From NCBI GenBank assembly GCA_028023455.1, contig JAQFVV010000008.1, forward strand, positions 9,486,001-9,550,000: DNA of 64,000 nt. Direction: 5' to 3'. The position numbers and the translations under genes are program-made. The first letter of the stretch is position 1; the number at the start of each line of letters is the position of its first letter. The notes below the pieces were generated by a model. The model saw nothing but the letters and a program-made list of their open reading frames with translations. It was not told the DNA's origin and did no database searches. The stretch is from Epiperipatus broadwayi. Taxonomy: Eukaryota > Animalia > Onychophora. Below, piece after piece: positions 2,229 through 62,271 of this stretch.

Positions 2229-4617
2229 AAACTAGTTTCACATGGAACTAAACTGGAATTTAATTTTCTATAGTTGCATTAGAAACACATCCACTACATT
2301 CAATAGCACATTTTTTTTAAAAAATAAAATATTTGCTAATAATTGATGATTTAAAAAAAAAAATAGTAATAATTTATTTTAATCTCATTCTAAAATTTTT
2401 TGTAAAAAATTCTTAAGATCATTGACATAGGAGCTGAACTTCTATGTCATAGAATCATATAGCTGTGTTGGAGAATGAATTCAAGTTTAGCCAAAGTTAA
2501 TTAAAATAGAATATATATTAAGTAATAGCTAGTATATTTTGCAAATAAATTCTCATTATTGAAATTAAACTCTCACTATTGGATAAAAAAGATTACAAAG
2601 GAATTCATACAAAAAAAGTATAAAGATTGTATTTTTTAAATTTCATTGGAAAATTGCAGATTCTACTGTTCCTAAAAATAATATATACTTTCCCAAGACT
2701 GTGGTACTCTTTTGCATTATCAGGTTAACGAGCATACTTGTTTCATTGATAGCAAAAATTCAAATTAAAACAGTATGAATCACATTTACAAAATTGTCAA
2801 ATGCATTAGTATTTATTCCTCAAGATAATATTAATATATTTTATATATCTGCTTACATTCATCAATTTATATTTGTCAAGCTGATGGATCTTTTGATGAC
2901 TTTCAGAACAATTTTTTTGCCCTTTGACTAAGTCTAAACACATTACAAAAAAGATTCCATTTTTCACTTGCAAATGTAAACAATGTATATAAAATATTTT
3001 TTAAATGCTTTTATTCAACTCACATTCTCTATATGTTTGTAATTTAAGTAAGAGATGTGAAAGGGCAATATAGATTTTTTTTTGGTTTCAATTGATTTAT
3101 TAAAAATGAGCTTGATTTAAATAATGAACAATTTTTTGGGGGTTCAATTGAAAGCTTAATGATTTATTAGATACATATATAGTAATGTACATACTAAATC
3201 TGATATATGCATATTAGCTTATTGCAGAAACATCAAGTGATATATATAAACTAAGTGTCAAATTGATTTCAAGTACTTTCTGTATTCTTTTAAATGAGCA
3301 AAACATGAAATTTTAAATAGATTTGAACTTAGTTTTGATATATATATATTATAGTAAGTAATACATAATTTAGAATGGAATTATTACTTTATAAAAAGGG
3401 AATTGCAAAATATAGTAAATACTTTTATTTGTTATGCACCAAAAATAATTGTTTCTTCAACCACCCTGAAATAAAAATGTGTGTGTGTGTGTGTGGGGGG
3501 GGGTTCCAGAAATTCCACCCTAAGTGGACCCCTATACTTTTATTTCAAGTTCAATTTAAAAATCCCAATTGTAGTTGAAAAAATATTTTTTTTAGTGCAT
3601 GACAAAAGCATTTACGATAAATTATTTTTAACCTGTATTAAGAAATATTTTTACTTAATTTGATGACTAATACACTAAAAAATAAAATTTATTCTTGGAA
3701 CACAATTTTGGTTATTATATATAACTTTGAATAAAAGTTTGAGTCATCCATAAATTAATTAAAAGATGTCTTATGCTTTTATCTAGCTATATAACAACTG
3801 AAATTGTGGTCTAATATATATATATTTTGCTTTTTAATATATCATTCCTTAATTTAAATAAAAGCATTTTAAAAAAACAACAATTATATATATATTTTTA
3901 ATTTTTGGATAGTTTGTTTCAAAAATATGTATACAAATTTTAAAGAAAATCCATTTAATAAAAGTAAGTTAAAAATCATTTGCAAACTTTGCCCCAAACA
4001 GTCTGAAAGGAAAAGTTAAATAAATTATATCTATTATATGTGGTTTACAAGATTTTTATTTAATGGCAGAGGTTTAAAAATACATGTTTTATATAAACAA
4101 TCCAAAGGAAAATTAAGATTTCATTTTTCCTTTTTATTATAATTGTAAGTTTCTTACTCAAATTAAACAGAAACATTTTCTTGAAAAATGTAATGACATC
4201 TATTGCATATGACTAAAACTTTAACAAACTCATTTGAATTTGAATTGTGACTTGCCAATTCTGTTAGACTGGATAATCCTGAAAGATTATATTGCTATAT
4301 TGCATTGCCAATGAATCCAAACACAAGTACAAATTTGAAAAATCCATTAGGCAGAAATAGGTTAAAAATTGTTACAAGATTTGATCCAAATAAACTAGTC
4401 TTAAGTTAAATAAAAACATTTGAAAAGATAGCAACATTTAATAATTTAAAAAGTAATTTGTTCATTTTTTAAAAAGCAAATATTTGATACAAAAAATATC
4501 ACCAAATGGAGTTCCTTTATATTACAAGTATTAATTAAATCAATACTAACATTAACATTTTATTTTTAAAAATGTTATCTTGATTTACAAATGTACAGTT
4601 GAGAACATATTTTAATT

Positions 4618-5216
4618 GGTAGTTGTGAGTTTTCAAGTAAACCAAGATGGCAGCCTGTATTTTTGATAAATCTAGTTTTGGGGCCCTCAAAAAATGTTTA
4701 CAAAAATGCCTGCTAGGAAAGATCATATTTAATAATTACATTTTATTTTTTATTAGTTATTTTTTAAAAATGAAATCATTGTAAAAAAATTAATTAATGT
4801 TTATAGTTTTTCTTTTTTTGGATTAACTTATTAACAGAAAAATGAAAAAATATATAAATTCAATACTTATCATTTATTCATGTTGGAAGTGTGTAATCAT
4901 ATGATGGGGAGGGGGTATTCCATATCTTTGGAATTATCCACTGCATCATGTTCCCAAATTTTATCATTATGAAAATTTACAAAAAAAAACAACATACTGA
5001 ATTGAACCAAAGTACTACAATGTTAAGAGCATCTTGTCACTTCCATGTCATAAGTAAAAAAAATGATATAAATTTTTTTTAATGAAATTTAACAATCGAT
5101 TTATTAATTTTGTTTTAATTTAACTACTAACACACTTTTGGTATAGGCTCTTGAAACTGTACATTTATCAAAAATACAGGGTGCCATCTTGGTTTATTTG
5201 AAAACTCACAAGTACC
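4618..5216. mobile_element. Non-autonomous DNA transposon (MITE) with GGTA-starting TIRs, Merlin-like
   Basis: 54-bp TIRs at 4618-4671 (ggtagttgtgagttttcaagtaaaccaagatggcagcctg...) and 5163-5216, 3 mismatches. Flanks ttttaatt / ttttattt (7/8) fit an 8-bp TSD. No coding content. Confidence 0.65.
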
Positions 5217-5319
5217 TTTTATTTTTACAATTTAATGTAAATTAGATAATTTGATTGTTATAAACTGATTATAATTGAGTATTAAGAAAAGATAAATTAA
5301 TATTCAAAACTTTTACATT

Positions 5320-5364
5320 GCACTAAGCATGCATTCATCAAAAGCAAACCAGTCAGAATCAGTG
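5320..5364 (-). ncRNA. Decayed minimal type I hammerhead ribozyme motif (inverted partner of 7500-7543)
   Basis: Minus strand reads CACT GATTCT GACTGGTTTGCTTTTGAT GAAT GCATGC TT AGTGC. Stem I (CACT/AGTG), palindromic stem III (GCATGC) and the UH site are kept. The core has a 2-nt deletion and stem II is damaged. Confidence 0.45.
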
Positions 5365-5412
5365 GTTTTGTTTGCAGTTGAAAATTATGCCTATATATGT
5401 GGACATAATTTA

Positions 5413-6633
5413 CACTCAGGTCTCATTTTATGCAAATTTATTTAATGCAATTTTGAAGTTATGCGATAAAAATTATTAATCAAAAGTTGAGCTTTGATAA
5501 TGCGCTATTACTTTAAATATTATAAATTTTGTGCACTCACTTCATATTTAAAGTAATAGCGCATTATCGGAGTTTGACTTCCATCTAATAATTTCAATAT
5601 TTTCAGCGCTTTACACTAGTATTGTAATAGATTTTATGCAATAAAGTTCACACTTCACTTAAAATCAGGATTTCCCCATTTTATATACACACATTAAATT
5701 TTACAAGACTATAATGTAAATCTGTTGAAACACTATAGATGAAAAATACTATGTATGTTGTTGTTTTTGCATTTTAAATCACATTTTATTTTTGCTTTTT
5801 ATAAAGAGTATGTAATCAATTAAGCATTTTGTGTCCACAAGTTTATTTTTAAAAGGTGAGTGACAACGGTGGGCACAATTTAAATCTGATTTTTAATTGT
5901 AATTAACAATTTAAAAATTACGTAACGTGATCTGAAATTAAGGTGATGTGAAACAATGAAATTTGATTTTTAAACGGAATTAAAAAATTAAGGACAAAAT
6001 AAGAATTTAATTTTTAATTGTTAATTTTAATTAAATTTTGCCCAACAGTGGTGAGTCAGTGTCTTTTTATTATCGCAAGTCTAAGTTCTTATTTTTATTT
6101 TAAACTTTTAGTTTACTCTAATGGAGAGAAAAAAAACACCCAAGAAAATGAATTTCTTTGTAAACAAAAATTTCAATTTTAGATCACTTAGCGAAATGGG
6201 AAGGATCAACAGCGATTGGAAAACATTTTAGTTGTATTTCCTCTTGACTTCATTTAAGAAGCTATAGTACCTCACATCACATCATGACAAATCTGATGTC
6301 TCAAATAGCGATGATTAAAATACCATACATGTATGAAAAAAATGTAAATTATGCAAGCAAATATATTGTTTTGAATAAAATTAAATACTGTAGTTAATAA
6401 AAAAGTAAAAAAAGTTTGTGTTGTATCAATTTTTTTCAAATTTGAAATTTTTTATTAATCATATTTTATTTTATTTTTATGCAAAATTTGAAGTAATTTT
6501 ACATTGTTGCTTTTCTTTTATGCGATTTTTGGAAAATTACAGTACATATCCCCCATTTTTCAAGGTAAGTTAAATCTATTTTTGTGCGCATTTTCAGAAG
6601 AACCAATCTACCACATAAAATGAGACCCAGGTG
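5413..6633. mobile_element. Non-autonomous Tc1/mariner-type element (TA TSD, 21-bp TIR)
   Basis: TA|cactcaggtctcattttatgc ... acataaaatgagacccaggtg|TA (17/21). Internal 25-bp palindrome at 5496-5568. Reverse-complement copy at 52605-54051. Confidence 0.85.
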
Positions 6634-7122
6634 TATTATATAAATCATTTTTTTCGATAATGGAACACAAATCTTTTCTGTTGATTGCATTTGAATCCTT
6701 TGCAATCGCCTATACCTTTTTCTATTATCTCTTTTGGCACAAATCATCTTCACATTAATAGAATTGAAATATAACCCGTAGTGAACTCGTGATCAAGGAA
6801 GATCAAATTATATTCGTTATTTTTTGTTCAGTCGTATAAATGTGTGATGGGCAATCCTGGTGAATCTATTAACCTGTGACTCACCATAATACACAGCATT
6901 ACAAAATGGGGCACTACATGTAATTTTGTAAACTACTTGAGAAATATGTTCAGATAGTATTTTGTCTTTTGAATTATTTAACAAATTATTTAGTGATGGA
7001 GGTGATCTAAAGCCAACCCTGTAAGTATCAGCACATATATTCCTTAATTTTTTTTTTTTTGCCATTTTATGGATGAATAAAAGGCTTATCCATGCCCTTG
7101 GTATGTTATTTGTAATTTTATT

Positions 7123-7580
7123 TTTCAAGTAGTTTACAAAATTACATGCAATGCCCCATTTTGTAACTGTATATTATGGAGAATTGAAAGTGAATAGATC
7201 TGAGGATAACCAGGGCATATACTTATACATCAGAGCAAAACAAAATAAGGAATAGAATTCAATCTTCCTTGATCAAGAGTTTGCTACATCATATTTTCAA
7301 TCCTACAATGTGAGGATGGTTTGTGCCAAAAGAGATAGAAAACAGAAATACAAAGAGGCATGAGAGATTGTAAGGATTCAAATGCAATCAACAGAAAAGA
7401 TTCATGCATTCCATTGTTGAAAAAATTGAATATTTAAGTCTCATTTACATAATATATTACAACCATATAGAGGCATAATTTTCATCTGTTAAACAAACAG
7501 CACTATGATTCTGGCAATGGTCTGCCAAAAGTATGCTTAGTGTAATATAAAAGTTTTGAATATTAACTATTATCTTTTTT
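7123..7580 (+). mobile_element. Penelope-like element 3' part, right arm of the inverted pair
   Basis: Starts at caagtagtttacaaaattacatgcaatgccccattttgtaac (VVYKITCNAPFCN). Diverged inverted copy of the left arm; ends in a pLTR with a hammerhead motif. Confidence 0.7.
7500..7543 (+). ncRNA. Minimal type I hammerhead ribozyme motif, A3-U8 variant core (decayed)
   Basis: GCACT ATGATTC T GGCA-ATGGTC-TGCC AAAA GTATGC T T AGTGT. Stem I GCACT/AGTGT, stem II GGCA/TGCC, near-palindromic stem III, CUU site. Located just downstream of the GIY-YIG region, where PLE hammerheads sit. Confidence 0.6.
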
Positions 7581-8639
7581 TAATACTCAATTATGAGTTT
7601 ACAATAAAGAAGAGAGATTCAAATATCGTTTAGAATTATATAATTTGATAAATGCATCTATTTAAAAATGAAATTTTTCTATAAGGATTTTTTATTTATG
7701 CTTACACATAAACAAAAATAGCGACCATAAATTTACATAGGAACAGTAAACTAAAAGCATCAATTACAATGCAACAAATTAAATAACTTTCAATAAATAA
7801 TCAAAAAGCATAGATGTAAGTTCACAAAACATTAAAAACAGCATTATTTGGTATTTACTTGCAAAACAATGTAATGAAAAATTGTATTACTATCTTCCAT
7901 TAAAACTCCTTGTAAATATTTTTATATCTTTAATAAAATTAAAATATTCCAAAATTGGTGTGAACTAATAAACAGTTGATAATAAACCAACAAGATTTCT
8001 TTGCTTTTCCATTTAGAAATATCAATATAATTCCAAACAAATGTTTTTGTATCATTTCAAAGGCTATCTACCTTAAAGTTTACAACTTCAATTTAAATGA
8101 ATACTTGGATCTGCACAATGAAGTCTGGTAGAAGATTTATAAAGCAAATAAACACTTCAATAACTCAGACATCTTTGTCAGATATTTAGTTTATTTACCT
8201 TTTCTAACTCTAGCAATGACAATATTGTATACATTTTAAAAATAAAAGCCATACAAGTAGAATTTGAAAGCTAATCAATATTGAATAAAAAAATGTTTTC
8301 AAAGTCAAATATGTAAATATAATGGAAATCTAAATGCTAAATACAATCATTAAATCAATGAATGTGGCTAATATAGCAATGTCATGCATCAGACTTTTTG
8401 CAAATTTTATGAGTCCATTTGCATTTAGTTTTTCTTCTGCTATTTATTCATTGTTATTATTTGTTGTTTTTTAAAATCCTTTTCACATATGTAGAAAAAC
8501 TATTAACCAACAGCCATAAAAAAAGAATCAAATATTAATTAGTATTGAAGTAAAAAGAGATAACTTCTAAAAAAAAAAGCTGTAAAATGGCTGACATTTA
8601 ACTTGTGAACACAGTATGTTTAAATCAATGATCTACATC

Positions 8640-10919: not shown

Positions 10920-11330
10920 TTTGGGAAGAACAAACTCCATTGCCGTAGATGAAATCCCACTCCTCACCACCAAACTCAATGATGTTAATTCCCATGATGA
11001 TATTGGTGTAATAAAAATCTCCTTCATGACAAAATGAATGGTTTTATTAAAAATATAGTTACCTTAGCTTCCATTATTAGAGTTTGCTCTCTCTTCTAAT
11101 CATGATTCTTTCAAAGCCAGGAGATATATTTGTAGTTAACTTTGTGCCTTAATATTGATTGGGAATTTTATTCCACATATTCAGACAAATTATTTCCTTT
11201 CATTTTATGTGCATTGAAGAATTTTTTGCATATGAACAATCCATTCTATCACCACATCAATTTGTAATTTCATGAAACATTTTCGTAGAAATTTCAATAA
11301 AAGCTAAATTTGTACTGCATCTTTTTTTTA
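10920..11330 (+). mobile_element. Degenerate CR1/L2-like LINE RT C-terminal remnant
   Basis: LNDVNSHDDIGVI resembles the ..KDLGV.. motif; downstream frames are broken. Confidence 0.3.
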
Positions 11331-11929
11331 AAAATCTTAATATTGTAATGAAATTATTTCATTAAAAATAATTTATATTCAAAATATTTATACATTTACA
11401 ATAAGTACACTTATTATTATATTATTAGACTCGTATAACCTACCATAAATATTACAATTTAAAGTTTTTAAAATATCATCTAAAAGCATTATATTCATTT
11501 TTTTTTCTAATTTGTTTATAAATAAGCATATTCATGTGTTTATATATAAATGTTATTTCATCTCACTTAAGTAATTCAAAGCCTGAAATACTTTGCATTA
11601 AATGAGTTTTGTTTGTGAAACATTTTTTTCTTTTGATAAATAATTCATGTTTTCATATTATTTTATAAGGAAACAAATCCAGCTTCAATTTATCTGATAA
11701 TTTCCTATTAATAATAATAGTTAAGTTTAATATTATTGGCTCTCTAATACAAAAAAAATATCACAATTTATCATATTCAACAATCATGACATCACATATA
11801 CACTTGTCATCATCATCCAAAATATTATATGCATTTTTCATCAATTTCAAAATTATTACACAATATTATAAAATAATAAAAAACATGTATTTAATACATT
11901 TTTAAAAATAATTAATGTTTTTTTTTTGT

Positions 11930-12720: not shown

Positions 12721-13720
12721 TGAAAATATATAATTCTAAAAAATTAAAAGATTTTTCTTGCATAAATTGTAATATTTATGTTCATGTTATAAGCATGAAA
12801 TAAAAAATGGTATAATCGTATTAAATATATTATTCACTGAACATGCTTTCAACTATCAGTCAGATTTAGTGTTTAATTGTTGCACAATTTGTAACAATTA
12901 AAAATCTATTGTGCTTATGTAAATTAGATATTTACATATTCAATTTTTTTGATAATGGAACACTCAATTCTTTAATTGCAAAAGGCTCTCTCTCTCGCAA
13001 TAGCCAGTGCTTCTATAAATCTACATTTCCTGTCATCTGTGAACATAAATATTACATAATTTTGAAATGTGAGAAAGAACATATGAACATTTTAACATGT
13101 GTGATGACATGTTGGCACAATTATTTTATAAGGAAATAATCCAATTTTGCTTCAAATTGTGATAATTTCATATTAAGCTAAATGTAAAATTTAATATTAC
13201 TTATCTAATCTTAAAAATCTTGGTTAATAACTGTATTTTGTAACATTCAATTAAAGTATGATAAACAATCTAGTTTGCAGACTAAATTAAAATCCTCTAT
13301 AAAAAATGAAAAGTTAATTAATTTTTAAATTCACATAATTTATAATTAATAAAAAAAATTCTTACATTATAATTACTAAAAAAATTAAATTCTATAACAA
13401 ATTTTAATTACATATTTCCAATCAAGAAAAATTTTTTATGTAAAAAAAAGATTATTTGATATATTGCAAATTTGTTTGAAAATGAAAAGGGTACAAATAA
13501 TAATGTAATATAGAATAAATATTTACTTATATAGTTAAATTTATAATTGCAATAAGATTTAAAGTCATTACAATTATTACTAATAAAGTGTTTTGATTAG
13601 TATAAACATTATGTATTATAGCAGAAGGAAAAATATAATAAATTATAAAAATGTTAACAATTATTAAATATTAATCAGAGAATAAATAGGTTCATTCATT
13701 ATACAATGATAAATCTTTTT

Positions 13721-15336: not shown

Positions 15337-16402
15337 ATCTTTTTTCATTAGTCACAAAAAAATAAAAAATAGGTACTTTATTAAAACATATGTATTTGTT
15401 ATCAATCATTAATTTTTTAGTTACATCTTAACAAATATTAATAACACTATTAAAATTAATATATAGTAAATTAAATTTCAGATGAATCTTCAATTAAAAA
15501 AAAAATACCAAAGAAAAAGTCTCACTAATTCTCTTAATGATGAAAAGGCTCATTTATGTTAGTCTAAAATTGAGATAGTAGAATGAATGTTATGTTTAAA
15601 GAGTGGTAAACTACTACCAACAATAGCCTTATTACTTGGCCTAATTATTCTATCTACCTCTGGGAAGAAAACTTCATATACCTAAATAGTATGTAAATAA
15701 AATCATTATTAATTCTTTAAATTATGAAGTATATTATACAAGAAAAAACAAATCTTATATGCAGTTGAAATATAAAAACCTAGATTAGGAAAATGATAGT
15801 TTTTGACCATGTTAATTTTCTTTATCAGAATTCATCTCTAGTTCACAAAATAAACTTGATAATTTTAAAAATTTCATAAATTCCAAAGTTCATAAAGACA
15901 CATTTTTAAAACCCTGATAAAAATGTATACATAGAATGATAATAATTAATGAGCTTCATATAAAAACATTTATTATCATTGACAATATCTATAATATCAA
16001 TGTTCTCTGATGTCTTTAATTACAAAAAAGTTTCCAACTACATTGGTGTTTAATACTATTTCAGTTGACAATTTGGCAATATAAATATGATAGAATACAA
16101 TGCCTTTTTTACGACAATTAATTGTAATGATTTTATTAAGTTTCATCAATCCAATAGTGATGCTTCAGCCATGTTTTATGAGTACCTGTAATTGAAGAAT
16201 ATGACAACTGATTTATTCTTAACAGGTTAAAAATTCAAATATTATTGTGGAATAAGGTAGTATGATGTAGCAATATCAAAGAGTTTGGATATATTTTATG
16301 CATTTATTTTACACCCAATAAATGTTTTCTAGTAATATGAAATTTAAATCTTTGCCCAGACATTACTCAATCAAACAGAAGTGGACAGCACCTCTTTTAG
16401 AG

Positions 16403-18106
16403 CAGTGGTCTTCAACCAAAAAAGTTAGTACTAACAAAATAATAAGATTTTAAACTTTTAATTAACATAAAGTTTTTATTTTTTCATCGCACTTTTACCA
16501 GGTTAAAAAAAAAGAAACAGAACAAAAATGAAATCTAATCAATCATACATATATTAATTTGTTTTTCAATTTATCATAGATGTTTATGGAGGGGTAGAAT
16601 TAAATTTATTATTTTTCTAAAAAAATTCAAAATTAAAAAATAAATTATTATACAAACTCCAGTTGTCTTTTGATAGCCAATCACGGCCGCTTGTCGGCAT
16701 TGTTTATGTGTTAAAACAATAAAATGTAACGTTACCAGGCCGAAAATTTAAAAATACGGTGACTTTTTGATCTCTTAAATTTTTTCTACTCCCTCTGTTA
16801 ATACAATATTTCATTTTTAGTGGGTTTTTTTTGGCTTTAACTTTTATTTTTGAAATCAATTTTTTTTACCTTTTTTTCAAAATAAAAACCAAAAATAACT
16901 TCTATCTCTAACTTTTACAAAGTATTTCTCAACACCCCTCCACCCCAAAATAAAGTAAGATCAAAACTTTTGACTTTTTCAAGTTTCAGGTTTTTTTTTT
17001 GTTTAATTAAAACTACGGCGACTTTTTTTTGGCCTATAAGGTGATATCTTTTTTTCCTTTATTCGTATACCGCTAATATACTAAAACTTTTATTTTTAAA
17101 ACTAATTTTTATTACCTTTGTTAAAAAATAAAAACAAACCAAAAGTAACTTTTGTCTCAGTGAAGTCAAAAGTATTTCTCACCCCCAAATTAAAATAAGA
17201 TCTTTTTTGGCTTTAACTTTTATTTGTTAAATCAATTTTTATCACCTTTTTTTTTAAAAAGTAAAACAACCAAAAAATTTCTGTCTCTAACTTTTACAAA
17301 GTATTTCTCAATCCACCACCCCCAAATTAAAATAAGATCAAAACTTTTGACTTTTTCAAGTTTTGTTTTCTTTTTTTAAAAAAATACTCCCACTCTTTTT
17401 TTGGCATATAAGGCAATATATTTTTTGGCTTTATTTGTATGCCACTAATATACTAAAACTTTTATTTTTAAAACCAATTTGTTACCTTTTTTTAAAAAAC
17501 TTTTCCTATTAATTACATTTTTTGATCCTTTCAACACACCCCAGCACAAAAAAAAAAAAAATTACAATAACATCAAAACTTCAAACTTTTACACGTTTTA
17601 TTTTTTCAGATTTAAAATACATCAAATTTTTTTTTTTGGCTGTAAGGTGATTTTAATTACACGATTTCTATTTTGCCCTTACTACTATCAAAAGACAACC
17701 TCCATATATATATGACCATCTTGTATATTTAACATTAAATACAGATATTACATTTATCATAATCATTGCCATGTAATTACACTAGCTATGACATTTCCCA
17801 ACATTCAGGTGAATAACATTTTATTCTTGAATGTTTTAACAATGAAATAATAAACATAGAAATGCAAGCACATTAATGAGAACGATTGTTATTGTACTGT
17901 TTTCTGTGCTCAGCATGTGAAGGTAAGCAACACCATTACAATACACAATAACTAGTGTGCTGTTTTGGTTAGTTATAACAATTATGCTTATCTAAGGCTA
18001 AGCAGGCTGCATCTTTAAGAAAATTTATCTGTAAACTTCTGCCGGTCTGCAAAATCTTATCCTTATTTTTGCCGGTTTGCAGATGTGAAAGGGTTGAAGA
18101 CCACTG
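16403..18106. mobile_element. Non-autonomous hAT (Charlie-type) element
   Basis: Perfect 15-bp TIR CAGTGGTCTTCAACC / GGTTGAAGACCACTG. TSD ttttagag / ttctagag (7/8) with central TA. Confidence 0.85.
16661..17700. mobile_element. Nested TIR element filled with tandem repeats (GG-type terminus, superfamily uncertain)
   Basis: Ends agttgtcttttgatag / ctatcaaaagacaacc (15/16 inverted). Internal repeats with about 376-bp period (16827 vs 17203). No 8-bp TSD; only a tcc/tcc 3-bp match. Confidence 0.6.
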
Positions 18107-19659
18107 TTCTAGAGGAATTATCAATGTTCATTTTCATTAGAATGGTGACAGAGTTAACACATATTATAACATGACTTTGTTGTATCATTTATTATAAATC
18201 TGAATTTAAAACACATATATATTAAAGAACAATGCCTAATGATATTGAGATGTTCTATAATTTTGTTCGACAACTTTAGCAATAACTCAATTAAATTATT
18301 TTTTACATAAGTCAAATCACTTCCTCACACAGTATTATTTTACCAAGTATTGTGAAAACAGTTTATCAATAGTAAAGTGATTGATCATATATTTTTCAAT
18401 TACAGTTCACTTATTCACTCGATCCAAGTCCTTGTAATTTAAGGTTGTCAGAACACTTTAAAATCTGGTTAAATGACTCTTGAAAATTACAAGAGATAAA
18501 ATTAATTCAGATTGTGTTCCAGTATTGATATTATTCAACAAATGTATTTTTTAGAAAAAATGATGTTTATTATATGCTATAATTTCACATTTTCTCTTAA
18601 AGCAACTATTTATTTTTGCCTGAACTGTATGTTTGTGAAAACATTGATTGTATTCCATCAATGTTTATGTAGATTTTCAACACTCCCTTTTTAAATATGA
18701 TCACTCAATTTATTAAAATATTTTATTAATACTAAATGAATTATATTATATGCAAATAAATAATCAATCTGAAGAAACAGCAAAACATTTTATTGAATAA
18801 AACATGCATTCAAAAGCATATTTAATGAGTGCTCTCTTTTAATATTTCTTTTGTTGCTACACCAATATTTAATGTGTGATTTGATGTGTATTAATTCTGA
18901 AAGACATTGGGTTCTTAAATTGTAATATGTCAAAGAAATCAAATTTGAATTGGTTTATTAGAAACTTATTACTTTCTTCAATAACTTTATTATAATGTAA
19001 CTATACATATTAATAAAATCAAAGTATGTTTTTATTCAGACAAGAAAGGCTAAATTAGAAGACATTAATTTTCACTGCTAAAGAATAAATGTTACAAAGA
19101 CAGAAAAACAGGGGTAATTGTAAAGACATTTTAAAAAACAATATGCAATAAATTTTATAAAATGTGTACATTTAAAATGCAGAATCACTGATAATAATAT
19201 GCAATTAATAATTTGGGAAAAAAATATTGATAATTATCCAAAAAAAAAAAGAAGTGGTAAGCATGGCCAAAGACAAAGCTAGGAGGTTTATAATACTATA
19301 AACATAATTTACAAACAACTATAAATCAATAGATTTAGAAAATAATGAGTAACCACTATGAGCATTACATGTAATATAAAATGCATAAAAAAATTAAATA
19401 AGACCTCATAATTAATGAATTGAATCTTTTCATGTTAACAATTTTTAAGATATTTGTGGCAATAAACTAACTCATTCATAAATTACTGAGGAAAGCTGAG
19501 ATTGACTAGTTTTATGAAATTTGCTATTATCATTGATGTAATGATGACTTAGAATTTCAAATGAATATAAATCATAATTTGAGATTCATAAGTTGCAAGT
19601 GATAATGTGGCAAATGACACAATTTTCATGCCTCATCACAAAAACGTTTATACTATCTT

Positions 19660-19761
19660 GCATTGGTGGTCGAGAGGAAAGCGCGACTGCCTTGCACTAG
19701 TAGGCAGTTGCCCGGGTTGTGGATTCGCGTCCCGGCCAATGCTATGACACTTAAAAAAAAA
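19660..19761 (+). mobile_element. Short tRNA-derived SINE (or tRNA pseudogene) with A tail
   Basis: GCATTGGTGGTCGAGAGG...CCCGGCCAATGC forms a perfect 7-bp acceptor stem with an A-box-like start, followed by TATGACAC and an A-run. Second copy at 58876-58981 on the minus strand. Confidence 0.7.
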
Positions 19762-19779
19762 TTATCAGATGAGCTGGGT

Positions 19780-20800
19780 ACTACTTGGTTAAATTCAAAG
19801 CTAAATTTAAGAAAACGAAAGATAAATTACCTGATAATTATTTTTCTTGGAATGCTATGCACAGACAGAATTGATACAATTCTATTTCAAAGACTTCAGA
19901 TAAATGAATGATATGAGAAATCAATCATCCAGATATTTTAATAGTAATAACAGATTTTTATATAAAGTAATTTATTAAGGTATACCTACTAGATAATTCT
20001 TAACAAATGTCTAAACGTAAGATAATGGTGAATCCAAATATATGTTAATAGAAAGGGTAATTTATTACCAGGAAAAGAAAAAAAAAACATTTTATGAACT
20101 ACATTCAAAAGATCAACAGACATCTGTTGCTCTAATATCCGAGGCTGAATGCAGCCTATGTTACAAAGAATATAAAAAAAGATATTAGATTTTGGAATTT
20201 AAAACAATTCATAAATGGTTTAAGACCCAAATATGCTGTTAAAAAGACCAAATTATAACTACTAGATTATATGCAGGAAAAAACTATTTGATTTAGACAA
20301 TTTCACAGGGCTTCGGCTTAACTTCAAAAAGAAAAATGCAATAAACATTTTCAGAAAGAACTTCAGACTCAAAACAGACTTCAGATTTTAAGGTAATGGC
20401 ATAGTTTTATAAATAATACAAACAGAATCTATTTAAAAATATATATATATATAAATTTTATATTATTTTATTGATCATATTCACACAAAAATCTACAAGT
20501 TTCAACAAAATTCTTTGTAAATATGTATATGGACACACACATCAATATGTATGATGCTAAATTTATGCTGACAGTTAGTTGGAAATAAAGATGACATCAA
20601 AGATACTCTAAAGCAATGTGATAAATGGCTGAGAATGAAATACTTTAGAAATTTAGAATTAGACAAATTAAAGTCCTCTGGATTAAAAGTTCATTATAGA
20701 AATTAAGGAAGAGCACTGTAAGATATTAAACAAACAAATTAAAAGGCTGGCATGTGATGTATGGATAATTCACAAAAATTCAAAAACTAGAAATACTTTT
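19780..20800 (+). mobile_element. Degenerate LINE reverse-transcriptase remnant
   Basis: Fragmentary RT-like peptides with many stops; YAD-like motif near 20560. Confidence 0.3.
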
Positions 20801-23800
20801 TTGAGATTTCTAGATTTAGTGTATTTTTTCCAATCGAAAGGATAATCTACAGGATATTATTTTAAATGCAGCAAACAAGATTTTTGTTTAGTAATTAATG
20901 TTTAAAAAAAAAAAAAAAAAGTTTTATTACCAACATTAACCTTGGAGAAAAGGCAAACATATATCTATGAAATTAAATATTTTATTTATTTTAGAAATAT
21001 GCATTAATTTATTCAAAGAAAAAAAAAAAATCTCAGTAAATTTTAAAAGATCAAAGAACTTACTTTTAAATTTTGTTTTTCTAACAATTTTCTTCTTTTG
21101 GTATTAGAATAGACATATTCATTTACAAAATGTTGATGCTTAGAATAAAGATTCACTAATCTTTTTGTTAGTTTTATTTTGTACAGAAAAAAAGATTATA
21201 GCTTTTATTAAAACAATCAATATTAGGAACAAAAAATTAGCCCAGGTGTATATTTACTAAACTGCAAAAAATGAATAACGTTTCAAAAAACACACAGAAG
21301 TTTTTTGCTAATCCAAAATTATTACAGATTGAGTATTAATAATCTGTCAACCTTGGTTTAGAGCTTTTCTGGATTAAAAGATTTCAATACTTTTTGTATT
21401 ATACATTTGTCTATAAAATACTATTAATTGATGAAGACAGAATTTTTAAAAATATTTATTGGATATAATCAATTTTTATATTTATATAAAAAAAAATTAA
21501 AAGTTCAACATTTTTTAGAAATTTTGTTTTCTGGCAGTTTAAGTAACATTTAGGTTAAAGTTAAGTGTTAAACAATATTGGAGTAATCATTACAAATTTA
21601 ATTAAAAGAATTAAATGTTTTTCTTTTTCAGTTGCATTTTTGTAAGAAAAAATAAAAATCATATTGTATAAAAGAGATGGACAATTTTCTCTTGTAGCTG
21701 GAAATGACAAATTAAAAAACAAAAGAGAAACTAATAACCTAAGTAAATTGGTTTGTTTAGTTACTACAATGTTTATTTATTTATTTAAAAAATATTTATT
21801 AATTTAAGATTAAATAAAAAATGTTATTTGAGTAAATCTTAAATAAATTTAATCAAGGTAAAATATAATAAAGTTCAATGGTCAATTGTTGAATTATCAA
21901 TGCTCACTAAATTTTAGTAAACATAACAATAATTTTTTATTTTATTGGAATAGATCTGCCTCATATCTTATCCTCCTTGACATCTACAACTGATAGTGAT
22001 ACAGACTGTCTCTGATTGTTGTAGCATCTATACATTGATTTAATAATTAAAAAGACCAATTCAAATATGCAATACGATTTAAGCATAACTATTTTTTGCC
22101 TTTGTAGAGTTGGAAATTTAGATTTCAATTTCATTATTGAACTGTAATTTACAGTATTGTAAAATTATACTGCAACATAATACATATTACAAAAAAAAAA
22201 AAACTGATTGGTTTGTTTTTTGGTAGTTCACAAGAAGTTCAAATGCAAAAATCTTGAAGTTGAGCTACAATCCAGTCTTTGAACTCACGAATCTGCTACT
22301 CTATAATAAATCTGTTGAGTTTATATGAAATTTGATCACTGAAGGTAACAAAATTGAGTTGCAATCTGTGAACCTTGTGTTAGAAGTCCATTGTTCTATC
22401 ATTGCTCTAAATCATACAGGATGTTTATTGTAATTATTACTGGATAAAGAACTAAAATAGTAAAAATAACATTAAGGTCTACTATCCAAAAGTGTATGAC
22501 AATCTTTTTACCAATATTGAAAGTTACACCCATTATTACTTTTTTTTTATACAATTAACATAGTTGATGATATCTAATCTAGATTAGTTTTTTAGATATT
22601 TAATTCAAATTTATTTAGAAAATTTCCAATTGTCCAAAAAATCTTCCAAGTTTCATTTTGGAATTGAACTTTAAAAAAATAGCCAACTAACATCATAAGC
22701 TTTTACATATTAAAAAAACTATAAATTTTTAACAAAAATTCTACATGTGATAATCTATCAATAACCTCACTTCCCCAAATCAAGATTATTGATTTATTAA
22801 TATAATGAAGGGGGGAGGGGAGGGAATTATACAATTTAACATTTAATAAAAGAATATCTTCAAATTTTGCAACTAAAATCATTATTTTATTTTTCTAAAA
22901 AATAAATAAAATCAATTATAGATAAATGAAAATAATTTTAAGTTTTATTAAAAACTTTTATTTAAGACTTGTTTATTTGGGTTAAATTTTGTAACTGATT
23001 TTTAATCTATTTCTATTGAACATATTTTCTTCAAATTTTGTACAACTGTTCAGTTTCAATGACAATGCAATATATCAAAATTGCCCAACCTAATACTATT
23101 GGAGGCAGCACTTCAAGTTGAAATCAGTTTGACAAGTTTTGAATGATGCACAATAGATGGCACTTTTTTAAAAAATGTTTTGATAATTATTGTATTAAAA
23201 AGCATTTAAAATTAATTTTTAAAAAATAAAGGATGAAATTATAATTTCTTTATTTATTTAAATCTTATTTTTTTCTAACAGCTACCTTCACAAACACAAA
23301 AATCTTGGAACTGAGTTTTAACACGCACAAATTTAATTTCAAATATTACAACACCATTGCCTACATTCTGTTTTTAAAATTGAATATGAATAATTTTCCT
23401 ATTTATGATTTCAAAAAAATATGAGGATAAGATTCGAATACTAAAAAATAATATACATAAAAAATATTTGTTTCTTGAACCATAATTTTGATTATTATAT
23501 GTAACTTAAATAAAAGAATGGGGATTCCACAAATTAATTCAATTGCTATTTTTTTTGCTTAATAGTGATTGAATTAATTTATGAATGAATATATAAGAAT
23601 AAAAATTGTAATTCAAAAATTTTTTTTTGTTTTTAGTGCTCATCAAATTAAAACATTTAAAAGAAAAAAAATATATTGTTACCAAGGTTAGTAACTCTAA
23701 AAGAAAAGTGACATTTCAATTTTATATTATTTCTTATATAAAAAAAAATTGTAACACGTTTTCCATTACTAGTGTTTTAATTAATAATTATTTGATTTGA

Positions 23801-26335
23801 AGAATTTTGTCAATGACAAATGCAAATGATGAAATGAAAATTTGTTTGCAGATTGCCATTAAGAATTAAATAAAATTGTAGACTTAGAACACAGTACATT
23901 ATATGACAAAAATATGTAAATAGGTCCTTCTATTTTATTGTTTTGCAATAACAATCAATCAATATTATTATTATGAGTGTCTTTTTGCAGTCCAATTACT
24001 AGCAACCATTGGTTTTTATATTCAGCATATCATTAACAAGTATTCCAAATTTCTTAAAAATAAATAGTGATTCCATTTAAAAAAAAAAAAAAGGGGGGGG
24101 GGGAGGATATAAGATATAAATTACTATTACCATATAGGGACCTATATAAATTCTTTATCTAAATCATTTCACTCATGTATTAAAGAGGTATAAGTATATA
24201 TTTAACATAAATATTTATCATCTAGTTTTTTGAAATTAATTTTCTAAGTAAAAAACAATTTAAAACTGTTGATTATATTAATCAGAAAGGTTTATTGCAG
24301 TAATTAATCCATTATTTTGAAACATTCAAAATCTTCTCTATAGATGTTTGTAAGCCTTTAATGCCGGAATTTAGTGATTAATGGTTTACAAATTAAATCT
24401 CATATTTGTAATTATATTTTTTAGTACACAGTTTGAATAATGACTAATGTGAATCAAACAATAAAAATTTGGAGCAAGAGAATGGATTCTTATTCACTGT
24501 ATACCAAATACATTGACAGCAAAGATTTGTTAACTTTATGGGGCTGATTTTAATCTATTTATATGGTTTCTTGACTTGTCTATTTTTATCACATGTTCAT
24601 TTCTCAATGCATGTTCTAAGAATAGGGAGAGTTCATCTTTTCCATTTTTTACCTATGTATTTACTTTTTTCATATCAAAAAAAAAATTCTAGTTATAATT
24701 ACCCCCCCCCCCCCAATTAAAATTGCTGAAATTCTAGATTTACAACTTTTATTATATATATATCAATACAAAGTCAGCTAAAACAATCTTGTTTGCTAAA
24801 ACTTATTGAAAATATTACATATTTTATGTGTTCTCTTATATATATATTTTTAAAAAAATTGAAATATTTTGAATATAAGATTTTATAACAGTAAAATTTT
24901 ACATTTCCTGTATTGAAAGACTCTCAAGTTTAGGCTTTCCTTCTTATATTTCATTCACATAATATTTTAGCCCATTGATTCTATATTATTTGATATATAT
25001 TTTCCAATGAAACTTTTTTATTTCATTATTAAATAATTTCAAGAGCTTAGATTTTTCAGTTTACATGCTAAATGTTTATATAGTGAAAGATTTCAAAATA
25101 TTACACTTTATGATAATATATAATCACTATTTTTATTTTATATAGTGTAATTTTTCATTTCTTATTTTATGTACATTCAGATTACACAGAGCCCATTATA
25201 AAAAAGGTTAGGGTTTATATCTATATATTTATGCAGATTTTCAATATTATTATACATATTTCATATATATCTATAATTAGGATTTCTAATTTATATAATG
25301 ATAGATTTCATATTTTTTACTTTATAAATTTTCGATTGCATAAATGATACTTTTTTTTTTGCTAGATAAAAATGTTATCTATATCAATATCCATCACTAA
25401 TGACTGCATACATGAATGAGTTTTTAAAGTGATGATAATATGAATAAAGAAGCTCCAAATACAGATAAGGAAAATAATGATAATGAGGAAATATGCAAAA
25501 TATTTCTCTATCCTTGTCAATACAGAGATGTTAAAGTACTGAAATATTTGAATTGATTTTTGAAGCATTGTCCAAAAAATTATATGCAGATTATAATAAC
25601 TGGAAACCCATTTCTCTAAAAGAGTTGAGGCAGTTTTTTTGGATAGTGATATTATGAAGAATCACCAAAATGCCATATTACAAGTGGAACTCTTCAGAAA
25701 ACAAAATTTTCCTAAGTCTCCATATTTTCTTATTTGATGACAGGTAGCAAATATATATATCTTACTCATAAAATTTCTTCATTTTTCTGAAAATGAAAAA
25801 TTCAATGAAAATAACCATACAAATCCAAAGCTCTATTCTTCTATATAAAGTTCTGAAGTAGTTGAGCAAATGTTTTAAGTTTTTGTACCTTACAAATTAA
25901 ACTTTTAGTTTGGATGAAAGACTGATATTTTTCAAGGGTACCTTGAGAAAAAATAAATTACTTTTTTTTTGTGTCAACACTAAAATAATACTATATGCCT
26001 AAAAGGATAAGATAAAAAAAAAAATTAAATAATTAAAATATAAAAACATTTAATTATTTTATGTCCTGAGTGACTTAGTGGAGTATGGTCTCAAGAGCTA
26101 AAGATTTCCAGACTGAAGTTTAACTTGTCACTTCATATGACATGACCACCTGAGCAACTAATCATTTTATTATGTTTATTTTATTTCATTATTATTATTT
26201 CTTTCTATTTTGTAATATTGCTTTATGATGTTAAATTTCAAATTTTGTCAGAATTCAATACAACTGTCATAAAAAGAAATAGATATCTGAAAGTTCATCA
26301 AGTGCTCTACCTTGAATTGATTTTTAGAAAGGATA

Positions 26336-33710: not shown

Positions 33711-34926
33711 ACATTAAAAAATTTATACTAAAACAAATTTATCTTACATTAATCATAACAAAAAAATGATATATACACTATGCACGTGTATGATACACTA
33801 AACTACAAAATTCATTTGTCTTTAAAATAATATTTTCAAAAAATGAATATTTTCATAAAAGCTATTTTTTATTTTCATAAAATCTATTTTTTAAACAATA
33901 AAAAAATCTTTTTTTATTTTATTTTACAGAAAACAAAAAAATTATGAAGAATTTAGATGCAGACATTTAAAAAAAAAATTATTATTTTTTATATACAATT
34001 CAATTTTGTATACATTTTATACAGAATTTTCTCAATAAATTATTTTATATTTGTGCTTCCTTTGTAGAAGAAATTGGTCACACATATTCATGTGTATATA
34101 AATTATCTATTTATGTGTATATAAATTATTATATGGATGTCATACAAGCATTCAAAAGTGCATGCGAGAGATTTTGGCCTTTCAATTTAATTTCTAAACA
34201 CAGTAATACATATATTTGCACTTCCAATTTATAATGACCATTCTGAATTTTACAAAGTATTAATTAATGTGTGTCATTTTTAAATTTTTGTAGCATAATG
34301 TAAAAATAAGAATAAATTTAAAATTAATAATTTTAAAAATGTTCAAATTTTTTACTTTTGTATTTAATAATAATGATTATATATTTTCATTTTTATTATT
34401 ATATAATTTAGCATTATTATGAAAATTGCATCTTCAACAAAATGCACAAAAAGTCAATATAGCATAAGTGGAAAACAAAAAACTTAAAGCAACACATATG
34501 ATTAAAAAAAAAAGCCATAAAGAATTCTCATTGGAGCAAATATAAATAGATCAGAAAAAAAATATCATTACATTTAGAAAATCAACTAAACCTAAATGAT
34601 TCTCTTTATCACTTGTTAAATATTAAAATAGATTTTTAATAAATAGAAGTTTAATGCAATTAACACATGGAATATTTTTTGAAATTAGTTACTGTATACA
34701 GAAATATAAATATGATAAGTAATGCTAGTAATAATAATAGAGATTATATTTATTTCCAACCCCCCCCCCCATCTTTTGATAATGAGTTAAATTTTTTGGA
34801 TAATGTGGATTATTATTAAAATACAAATACAGTGGAGCTGCAAACTACGCTATATGTTATTCCACCTCCTCCCCTCAAGTTTAATGTATATAATGTATTT
34901 GCATATAATAACGTTGACAATCTACA

Positions 34927-34977
34927 AGGCTATGATTATGGAGTAACGAAACTCTGAAAGCGCGCAGCCTAAATAAA
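34927..34977 (+). ncRNA. Minimal type I hammerhead ribozyme motif, A3-U8 variant core (decayed at 16.1)
   Basis: AGGCT ATGATTA T GGAGT-AACGAA-ACTCT GAAA GCGC G C AGCCT AAATAAA. Perfect 5-bp stem I, 5-bp stem II, GAAA, palindromic GCGC, then AATAAA. The expected U16.1 reads G. Confidence 0.6.
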
Positions 34978-62229: not shown

Positions 62230-62271
62230 TATCTTGAGAAGGTCTCAATGGAGATGAAAGCCGGTTTGATA
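62230..62271 (+). ncRNA. Minimal type I hammerhead ribozyme motif, U3-A8 variant core
   Basis: TATC TTGAGAA G GTCTC-AATG-GAGAT GAAA GCCGGT T T GATA. 4-bp stem I, 5-bp stem II, GAAA, near-palindromic AGCCGG(C>T)T stem III, UUU site. Confidence 0.6.

Follow-up and report, generated by a model that had tools for sequence, protein, structure and literature searches.

The locus lies in a window of 64,000 nucleotides from the onychophoran Epiperipatus broadwayi (GenBank assembly GCA_028023455.1, contig JAQFVV010000008.1, positions 9,486,001 to 9,550,000), this being the whole stretch of DNA that was analysed, with a GC content of about 25%. To judge by its sequence, the locus consists of two 5'-truncated 3' ends of Penelope-like elements (PLEs) placed head to head, and appears to be a dead insertion that is ordinary in itself (Table 1). 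Repeat finding and self-BLAST put both of the hammerhead-like motif sites inside one inverted repeat, with the 5' ends of its two arms abutting at about 7118/7119. In a sensitive self-BLAST, 5255-5399 and 6636-6946 of the minus arm were 78% and 76% identical to the plus arm, respectively, and the minus arm was found to reach about 170 nt further 5' than its counterpart. Family contigs in the pile-up described below run on upstream of 7125 as loose ends encoding the same KDKI..EH stretch, and the plus arm is therefore 5'-truncated. Towards the other end, pile-up depth drops after 7594, with family contigs going on past an indel there; the tail ends have diverged and adjoin other repeats, and the 3' end is given as about 7615. 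The head-to-head arms present the arrangement of the PLE pLTR type, namely 5'-truncated copies in an inverted pair, and minimal hammerheads lying close together on opposite strands are known in PLEs (Cervera & De la Pena 2014, PMC4209133).

Table 1. Features of the head-to-head PLE locus and of the motif in its plus arm (positions within the window)
Feature	Position	Strand	Remarks and basis
Plus arm	7119 to about 7615	+	5'-truncated PLE 3' end
GIY-YIG endonuclease remnant, 5'-truncated, frameshifted	7119-7430	+	VVYKITCNAPFCN... to ...AINRKDSCIPLLKKLNI*; translations, inverted repeats
Spacer in the 3' untranslated tail, from reading-frame end to motif	7431-7499	+	
Minimal hammerhead-like motif	7500-7543	+	Sequence, fold, contig pile-up
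Helix I	7500-7504 with 7539-7543	+	5 bp, GCACU/AGUGU; AGUGC in the family majority
5' core A3-U4-G5-A6-U7-U8-C9	7505-7511	+	A3 = 7505, U8 = 7510, C9 = 7511
Unpaired U before helix II	7512	+	
Helix II	7513-7517 with 7522-7526	+	Loop 7518-7521; family-majority extent
AAAA, positions 12 to 15.1	7527-7530	+	
Helix III palindrome	7531-7536	+	Flanked by A7530 and U7537
Cleavage-site letters U16.1 and U17	7537 and 7538	+	Predicted scissile bond 7538/7539
Rest of the plus arm 3' tail behind the motif	7544-7615	+	End position approximate
Minus arm	7118 to 6636 and 5399 to 5255	-	Halves parted by an insertion of about 1.2 kb
Coding remnant of the minus arm (linker + GIY-YIG)	6636-7118	-	ORF 6817-7128(-), protein alignment, blastn
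Unrelated DNA inserted in the minus arm	5400-6635	.	About 1.2 kb; gap in homology, own repeats
3' tail of the minus arm with damaged motif at 5320-5365	5255-5399	-	

The DNA that parts the two halves of the minus arm carries a 125-nt near-perfect hairpin at 5470-5594 and three 44-nt AT-rich repeats at 5871-6035, and is probably a foldback or MITE-type insertion; the hairpin gave a sub-threshold, plant-miRNA-like Rfam match of 46.9 bits against a gathering score of 90.8. Directly to the left of the PLE pair lies a 62-nt inverted repeat (4613-4674 / 5160-5221, 90% complementary, 485 nt apart), which is probably another small foldback element and blurs the left boundary of the pair.

Translation of both arms revealed the GIY-YIG signature VVYKITC.APFCN..YYGES...R..H followed by frameshifts and stops, the reading frame of the plus arm ending near 7430, about 70 nt before the start of the motif. 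The intact 103-aa ORF of the minus arm aligned with residues 706-772 of P0012 (40% identity, E 3e-11), a protein of 876 aa in which an RVT_1 domain at 358-557 precedes the aligned region; on sequence grounds, this order of RT then GIY-YIG is the one seen in Penelope-like elements. Only the endonuclease end remains at the locus, the RT part being absent because of the 5' truncation. The Pfam GIY-YIG model gave no match to the decayed ORF of the window at E 0.1, and a word-indexed protein search with the 103-aa ORF likewise returned no match, while the relatives found by exhaustive phmmer were all of 45% identity or less. The contigs of these relatives showed no DNA similarity to the window family wherever the DNA could be compared. 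One JGI metagenome contig (L002, 27% GC) carries a distant PLE-like ORF, and in its 3' flank, at 1225-1290, UUGAAAA comes before a hairpin GUGGC-UGAG-GCCAC, behind which stand GAAA, a short AU palindrome and UU; going by these letters, the segment looks like a U3-A8 minimal hammerhead of an AT-rich eukaryote sampled in the metagenome.

Anatomy of the motif

The preliminary description had recognised a minimal hammerhead of the PLE pLTR type behind the GIY-YIG region, reading GCACT ATGATTC T GGCA ATGGTC TGCC AAAA GTATGC TT AGTGT on the plus strand, and both the letters and the assignment hold, the architecture and the position agreeing with those published (PMC4209133). In the minimal hammerheads of PLEs, helix I has 4-5 bp, helix II is long, and helix III is a small palindrome that works through dimers (PMC4209133). 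The motif at 7500-7543 has the corresponding type I layout with an open helix I of 5 bp, an unpaired nucleotide followed by the helix II hairpin, a short palindrome able to pair between two copies as helix III, and the U16.1 then H17 letters of the cleavage site. Its helix II, which in the window copy spans 4 bp (GGCA/UGCC, 7513-7516 with 7523-7526), is shorter than the published 6-8 bp. The window copy folds into the hammerhead shape, though without statistical weight (z = -0.96).

The departure lies in the core, where the consensus C3-U4-G5-A6-N7-G8-A9 ... G12-A13-A14-A15.1 is replaced by A-U-G-A-U-U-C ... A-A-A-A. A3-U8 is acceptable as a covariation of positions 3 and 8, but C9 and A12 are not. 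The assignment of these positions is anchored by the UGA of the uridine turn, which is placed by one register only and leaves the eighth letter, U7512, outside the core. Two other registers were considered and rejected: if helix II is made to begin with the pair U7512-A7527, what remains is AAA, a G15.1-C16.1 and an extra U, and if C7511 is treated as a bulge, the core has six letters only. A motif on the opposite strand was likewise discarded, there being no UGA/GAAA arrangement there.

The partner in the minus arm had been described as bearing complementary damage. Its 3' letters are as given (the reverse complement of 5320-5365 ends in GAAT GCATGC TT AGTGC), but as a whole it is the worse preserved of the two: A3 and U4 are deleted, helix II is gone, and it does not fold into the hammerhead shape.

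The family majority and related tails

Logan contigs from two DNA runs of the same organism and from two RNA-library runs were aligned on 7100-7650 at a likeness of at least 80% to the window copy. About 1,300 contigs were matched per DNA run, with 105-114 across the motif, and the summed word depth across the motif, which is not a copy number, reached 16,000-24,000 as against about 25-30 for a contig with an exact match to the locus. This makes the family very abundant and high-copy. Three majority letters within the motif differ from the window copy, namely 7517 A>G (74%), 7532 T>C (77%) and 7543 T>C (78%), and each of them gives a Watson-Crick pair where the window copy has a mismatch or wobble, one per stem. 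In the majority, helix II is GGCAG/CUGCC (5 bp) around a UGGU loop, helix III reads GCAUGC, which makes AGCAUGCU a perfect 8-nt palindrome, and helix I ends in G-C. This stem-restoring pattern looks like decay from a structured ancestor; the window copy itself has undergone three further transitions, each weakening one stem, and has no function at the locus. The majority motif folds as a monomer with an MFE of -15.4 kcal/mol, better than 98.8% of shuffles, and its dimer is predicted at -41.2 kcal/mol compared with -30.8 for two monomers, a gain of about 10 kcal/mol.

The 42 differences listed in the pile-up include no other letter at 7505-7512 or 7527-7530. As differences found in a single contig are listed elsewhere in the pile-up, a majority alternative present in dozens of contigs would show, and A3, U8, C9 and AAAA are therefore taken as the majority states. 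They rest on one pile-up of assembler contigs, as distinct from individual family copies, and the weakest link of this inference is that it draws on the 42 differences listed, beside which there are 120 weaker ones, so that sizeable G12 or A9 minorities are compatible with the pile-up. Within that scope, A3-U8, as previously proposed, and C9, as previously noted in both copies, are borne out as family traits, and the abundant copies show neither a canonical CUGANGA core nor unpaired stems. The consensus put forward earlier, GAAA GCATGC UU AGUGC, stands in its palindrome and in its helix I strand, as seen in the majority letters at 7532 and 7543, respectively. Its GAAA finds no such support, as the differences listed include no majority G at 7527 and most copies of the subfamily would read AAAA (A12).

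RNA-library contigs of two organisms match the tail, one of them spanning 7398-7650 with 14 differences. The family may accordingly be transcribed and shared by a related species, with DNA carry-over as an alternative.

Two further motifs in the window share the layout of 7500-7543 with different stems and keep A9 and G12. The copy at 34927-34970 (+), AGGCU AUGAUUA U GGAG...CUCU GAAA GCGCGC AGCCU, belongs to another family of the same genome and is without the U16.1-H17 letters between palindrome and helix I; it shares A3-U8 and the extra U after position 9 with the motif under study but differs in retaining A9/G12. At 62230-62271 (+), UAUC UUGAGAA G GUCUC-AAUG-GAGAU GAAA GCCGGU UU GAUA is a clean minimal motif with the published U3-A8 core, for which 0.05 descriptor matches are expected in shuffles. 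The weaker copies at 5320-5365 and 12834-12876 have G at the position aligned to 12, the latter (minus strand) ending in GAAA GCAUGU UC AGUGA with helix II lost. Judging from these alignments, G12 exists in close relatives and A12 might mark one subfamily only. With C9 common to three copies in the window and A12 marking the subfamily of the plus arm, the core changes may tentatively be ordered as A9/G12, then C9/G12, then C9/A12. The 12834 copy lies in one of two more tails that have decayed, at 12831-12973 (-) and 11320-11504 (-), which belong to this PLE family or to a sister of it; the tail at 11320-11504 is heavily transition-mutated.

Homology and catalytic competence

On its own, the motif is weak evidence of a hammerhead; what raises it above chance is where it lies, behind a PLE gene, and that it is conserved across a high-copy family. 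Rfam searches returned no hammerhead, either over the whole window at the gathering score or over 5000-8000 at E<=10. A relaxed descriptor, in which A3-U8 was accepted and positions 9 and 12 were left free, gave three matches in the window as against 0.5 in dinucleotide shuffles, and the other two matches look like AT-rich noise. A covariance model (R1) built from the window copy and the majority letters recovered only the minus arm (E 0.09) and, near noise, the motifs at 34923 and 12831; its match at 7837-7876 had the look of chance when inspected. The motif pattern was not found in two scans of metagenomes and one of viral sequences, and the sole genome contig match, considered as a family copy, was dismissed as a chance match within a bacterial gene of 53% GC. 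It could be argued from the missing Rfam match, the chance matches of the relaxed descriptor, the z-score of the single-copy fold and the deviation of four of about twelve conserved core positions that the motif is not hammerhead-derived at all, being instead a hairpin and palindrome of a PLE 3' tail whose look-alike shape arose in AT-rich DNA. That explanation is highly improbable, given that all elements have the order and spacing published for the PLE minimal hammerhead, with UGA at 4-6 and AAA at 13-15.1 present along with the unpaired nucleotide and the U16.1-U17 site, that a motif of this kind is expected where this one lies, behind the GIY-YIG gene, and that the window holds sister families which pass by degrees into the canonical 3' core GAAA. 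The motif most likely descends from a PLE minimal hammerhead, yet departs from the core consensus and escapes the Rfam models; searches with descriptors or with Rfam overlook a large class of motifs derived from hammerheads.

Whether such a core could cleave is best judged from published mutagenesis. G12 is the general base of the hammerhead, and G12A slows the full-length ribozyme about 10^5-10^6-fold and the minimal one more than 500-fold, and also removes hydrogen bonds of the G12/A9 sheared pair (PMC2553840). Complete coverage of single and double mutants of a hammerhead uncovered no compensatory mutation for either catalytic letter, G8 or G12, and in the core only the C3G/G8C swap was rescued (PMC9901934). 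By these data, cleavage by a core with A12 and C9 should be extremely slow or absent, and our analysis suggests that 7500-7543 is a genuine derivative of the hammerhead, one that has probably lost its catalysis. Given A12 and C9, it should not be presented as a working A3-U8 ribozyme. In vivo cofactors could alter the picture, PLE minimal hammerheads being weak in vitro anyway (PMC4209133).

Two ways in which activity might have been preserved were weighed. The family could carry a working A3-U8 hammerhead whose true consensus is GAAA, with G12, the AAAA of the window copy being private decay; the minus arm and the 12834 copy indeed read G at the aligned position 12, the other PLE family in the window has AUGAUUA...GAAA, and G-to-A transitions are the commonest change in the pile-up. 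This is nevertheless unlikely, since the three majority differences inside the motif are each carried by more than 100 contigs and none falls at 7527, where a majority G would have had some of the strongest support; the majority keeps C9 as well, and A3-U8 is not among the rescued double mutants (PMC9901934). Alternatively, the C9/A12 core might be a functional natural variant that replaces the A9-G12 sheared pair, perhaps with a cofactor or a shifted pH optimum. According to isostericity tables, A-G can be replaced by a C-A trans Hoogsteen/sugar-edge pair. Across the hundreds of copies of the family the state seems to be fixed, with all stems preserved, and positions 9 and 12 are in contact in crystal structures as the G12/A9 sheared pair (PMC2553840). 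Against this stand the N1 pKa through which G12 acts, a property that A is unable to imitate (PMC2553840), and the full set of double mutants, in which no second change compensates at G12 (PMC9901934); the functional variant is held to be very improbable. The reading we favour, and hold to be likely, is that of a dead PLE pair bearing a pLTR minimal hammerhead with a deviant core, in a subfamily that lost catalysis and was amplified despite the loss. What the data show is the sequence, its context, its architecture and the majority states; homology to the hammerhead, loss of catalysis and amplification in spite of it are what we infer from them.

On this favoured reading, the RNA of an active element would pair with a second copy via the palindrome A-GCAUGC-U, building helix III in trans, and a cut after U17 would trim the transcript. 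In the subfamily, the core would have drifted from the canonical state, C3-G8 to A3-U8, A9 to C and the general base G12 to A, with the architecture of helices I and II, unpaired U, palindrome and UU site retained. The subfamily would most likely have multiplied with a crippled ribozyme, the motif being kept simply as a stretch inherited from its ancestor or, perhaps, for a part in structure or dimerisation.

Relation to known hammerheads and significance

The closest published counterparts are the PLE pLTR minimal hammerheads, including the U3-A8 covariant of Schistosoma Cercyon, which are alike in their place behind an RT/GIY-YIG gene in the terminal repeat (PMC4209133). The present motif differs from these in that the swap is A3-U8 and not U3-A8, that helix II of its family has 5 bp in place of 6-8 bp, and that positions 9 and 12 are C and A where A and G are invariant. 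The engineered G12A sTRSV hammerhead of Chi et al. (2008) carries the same general-base substitution with the overall core fold kept (PMC2553840); there it is a laboratory mutant, whereas here it appears as the majority state of a natural transposon subfamily, accompanied by C9 and A3-U8. The natural variants of Perreault et al. (2011) similarly include rare core departures and the tolerated 3-8 covariation U3-A8, the others being A6C, A6a, U13a, U15.1-A16.1 and U10.1-U11.1, with none at A9 or G12 (PMC3088659). A3-U8 extends the published U3-A8 covariation, and the new part is the C9/A12 state together with its majority status.

If the majority inference holds, the subfamily multiplied with A12, and either cleavage is not needed for the spread of PLEs or the motif has another role. 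It is tentatively proposed, as a possibility on the doubtful side, that a PLE subfamily reached hundreds of copies with A12, C9 and A3-U8, and that either cleavage is dispensable for PLE retrotransposition or C9-A12 is a workable natural substitute for the A9-G12 pair. Were cleavage dispensable, the motif would serve as a structure or a dimerisation signal. A high-copy subfamily that has kept all the helices of its motif and lost the general base would amount to an experiment of nature that asks if transposition depends on cleavage.
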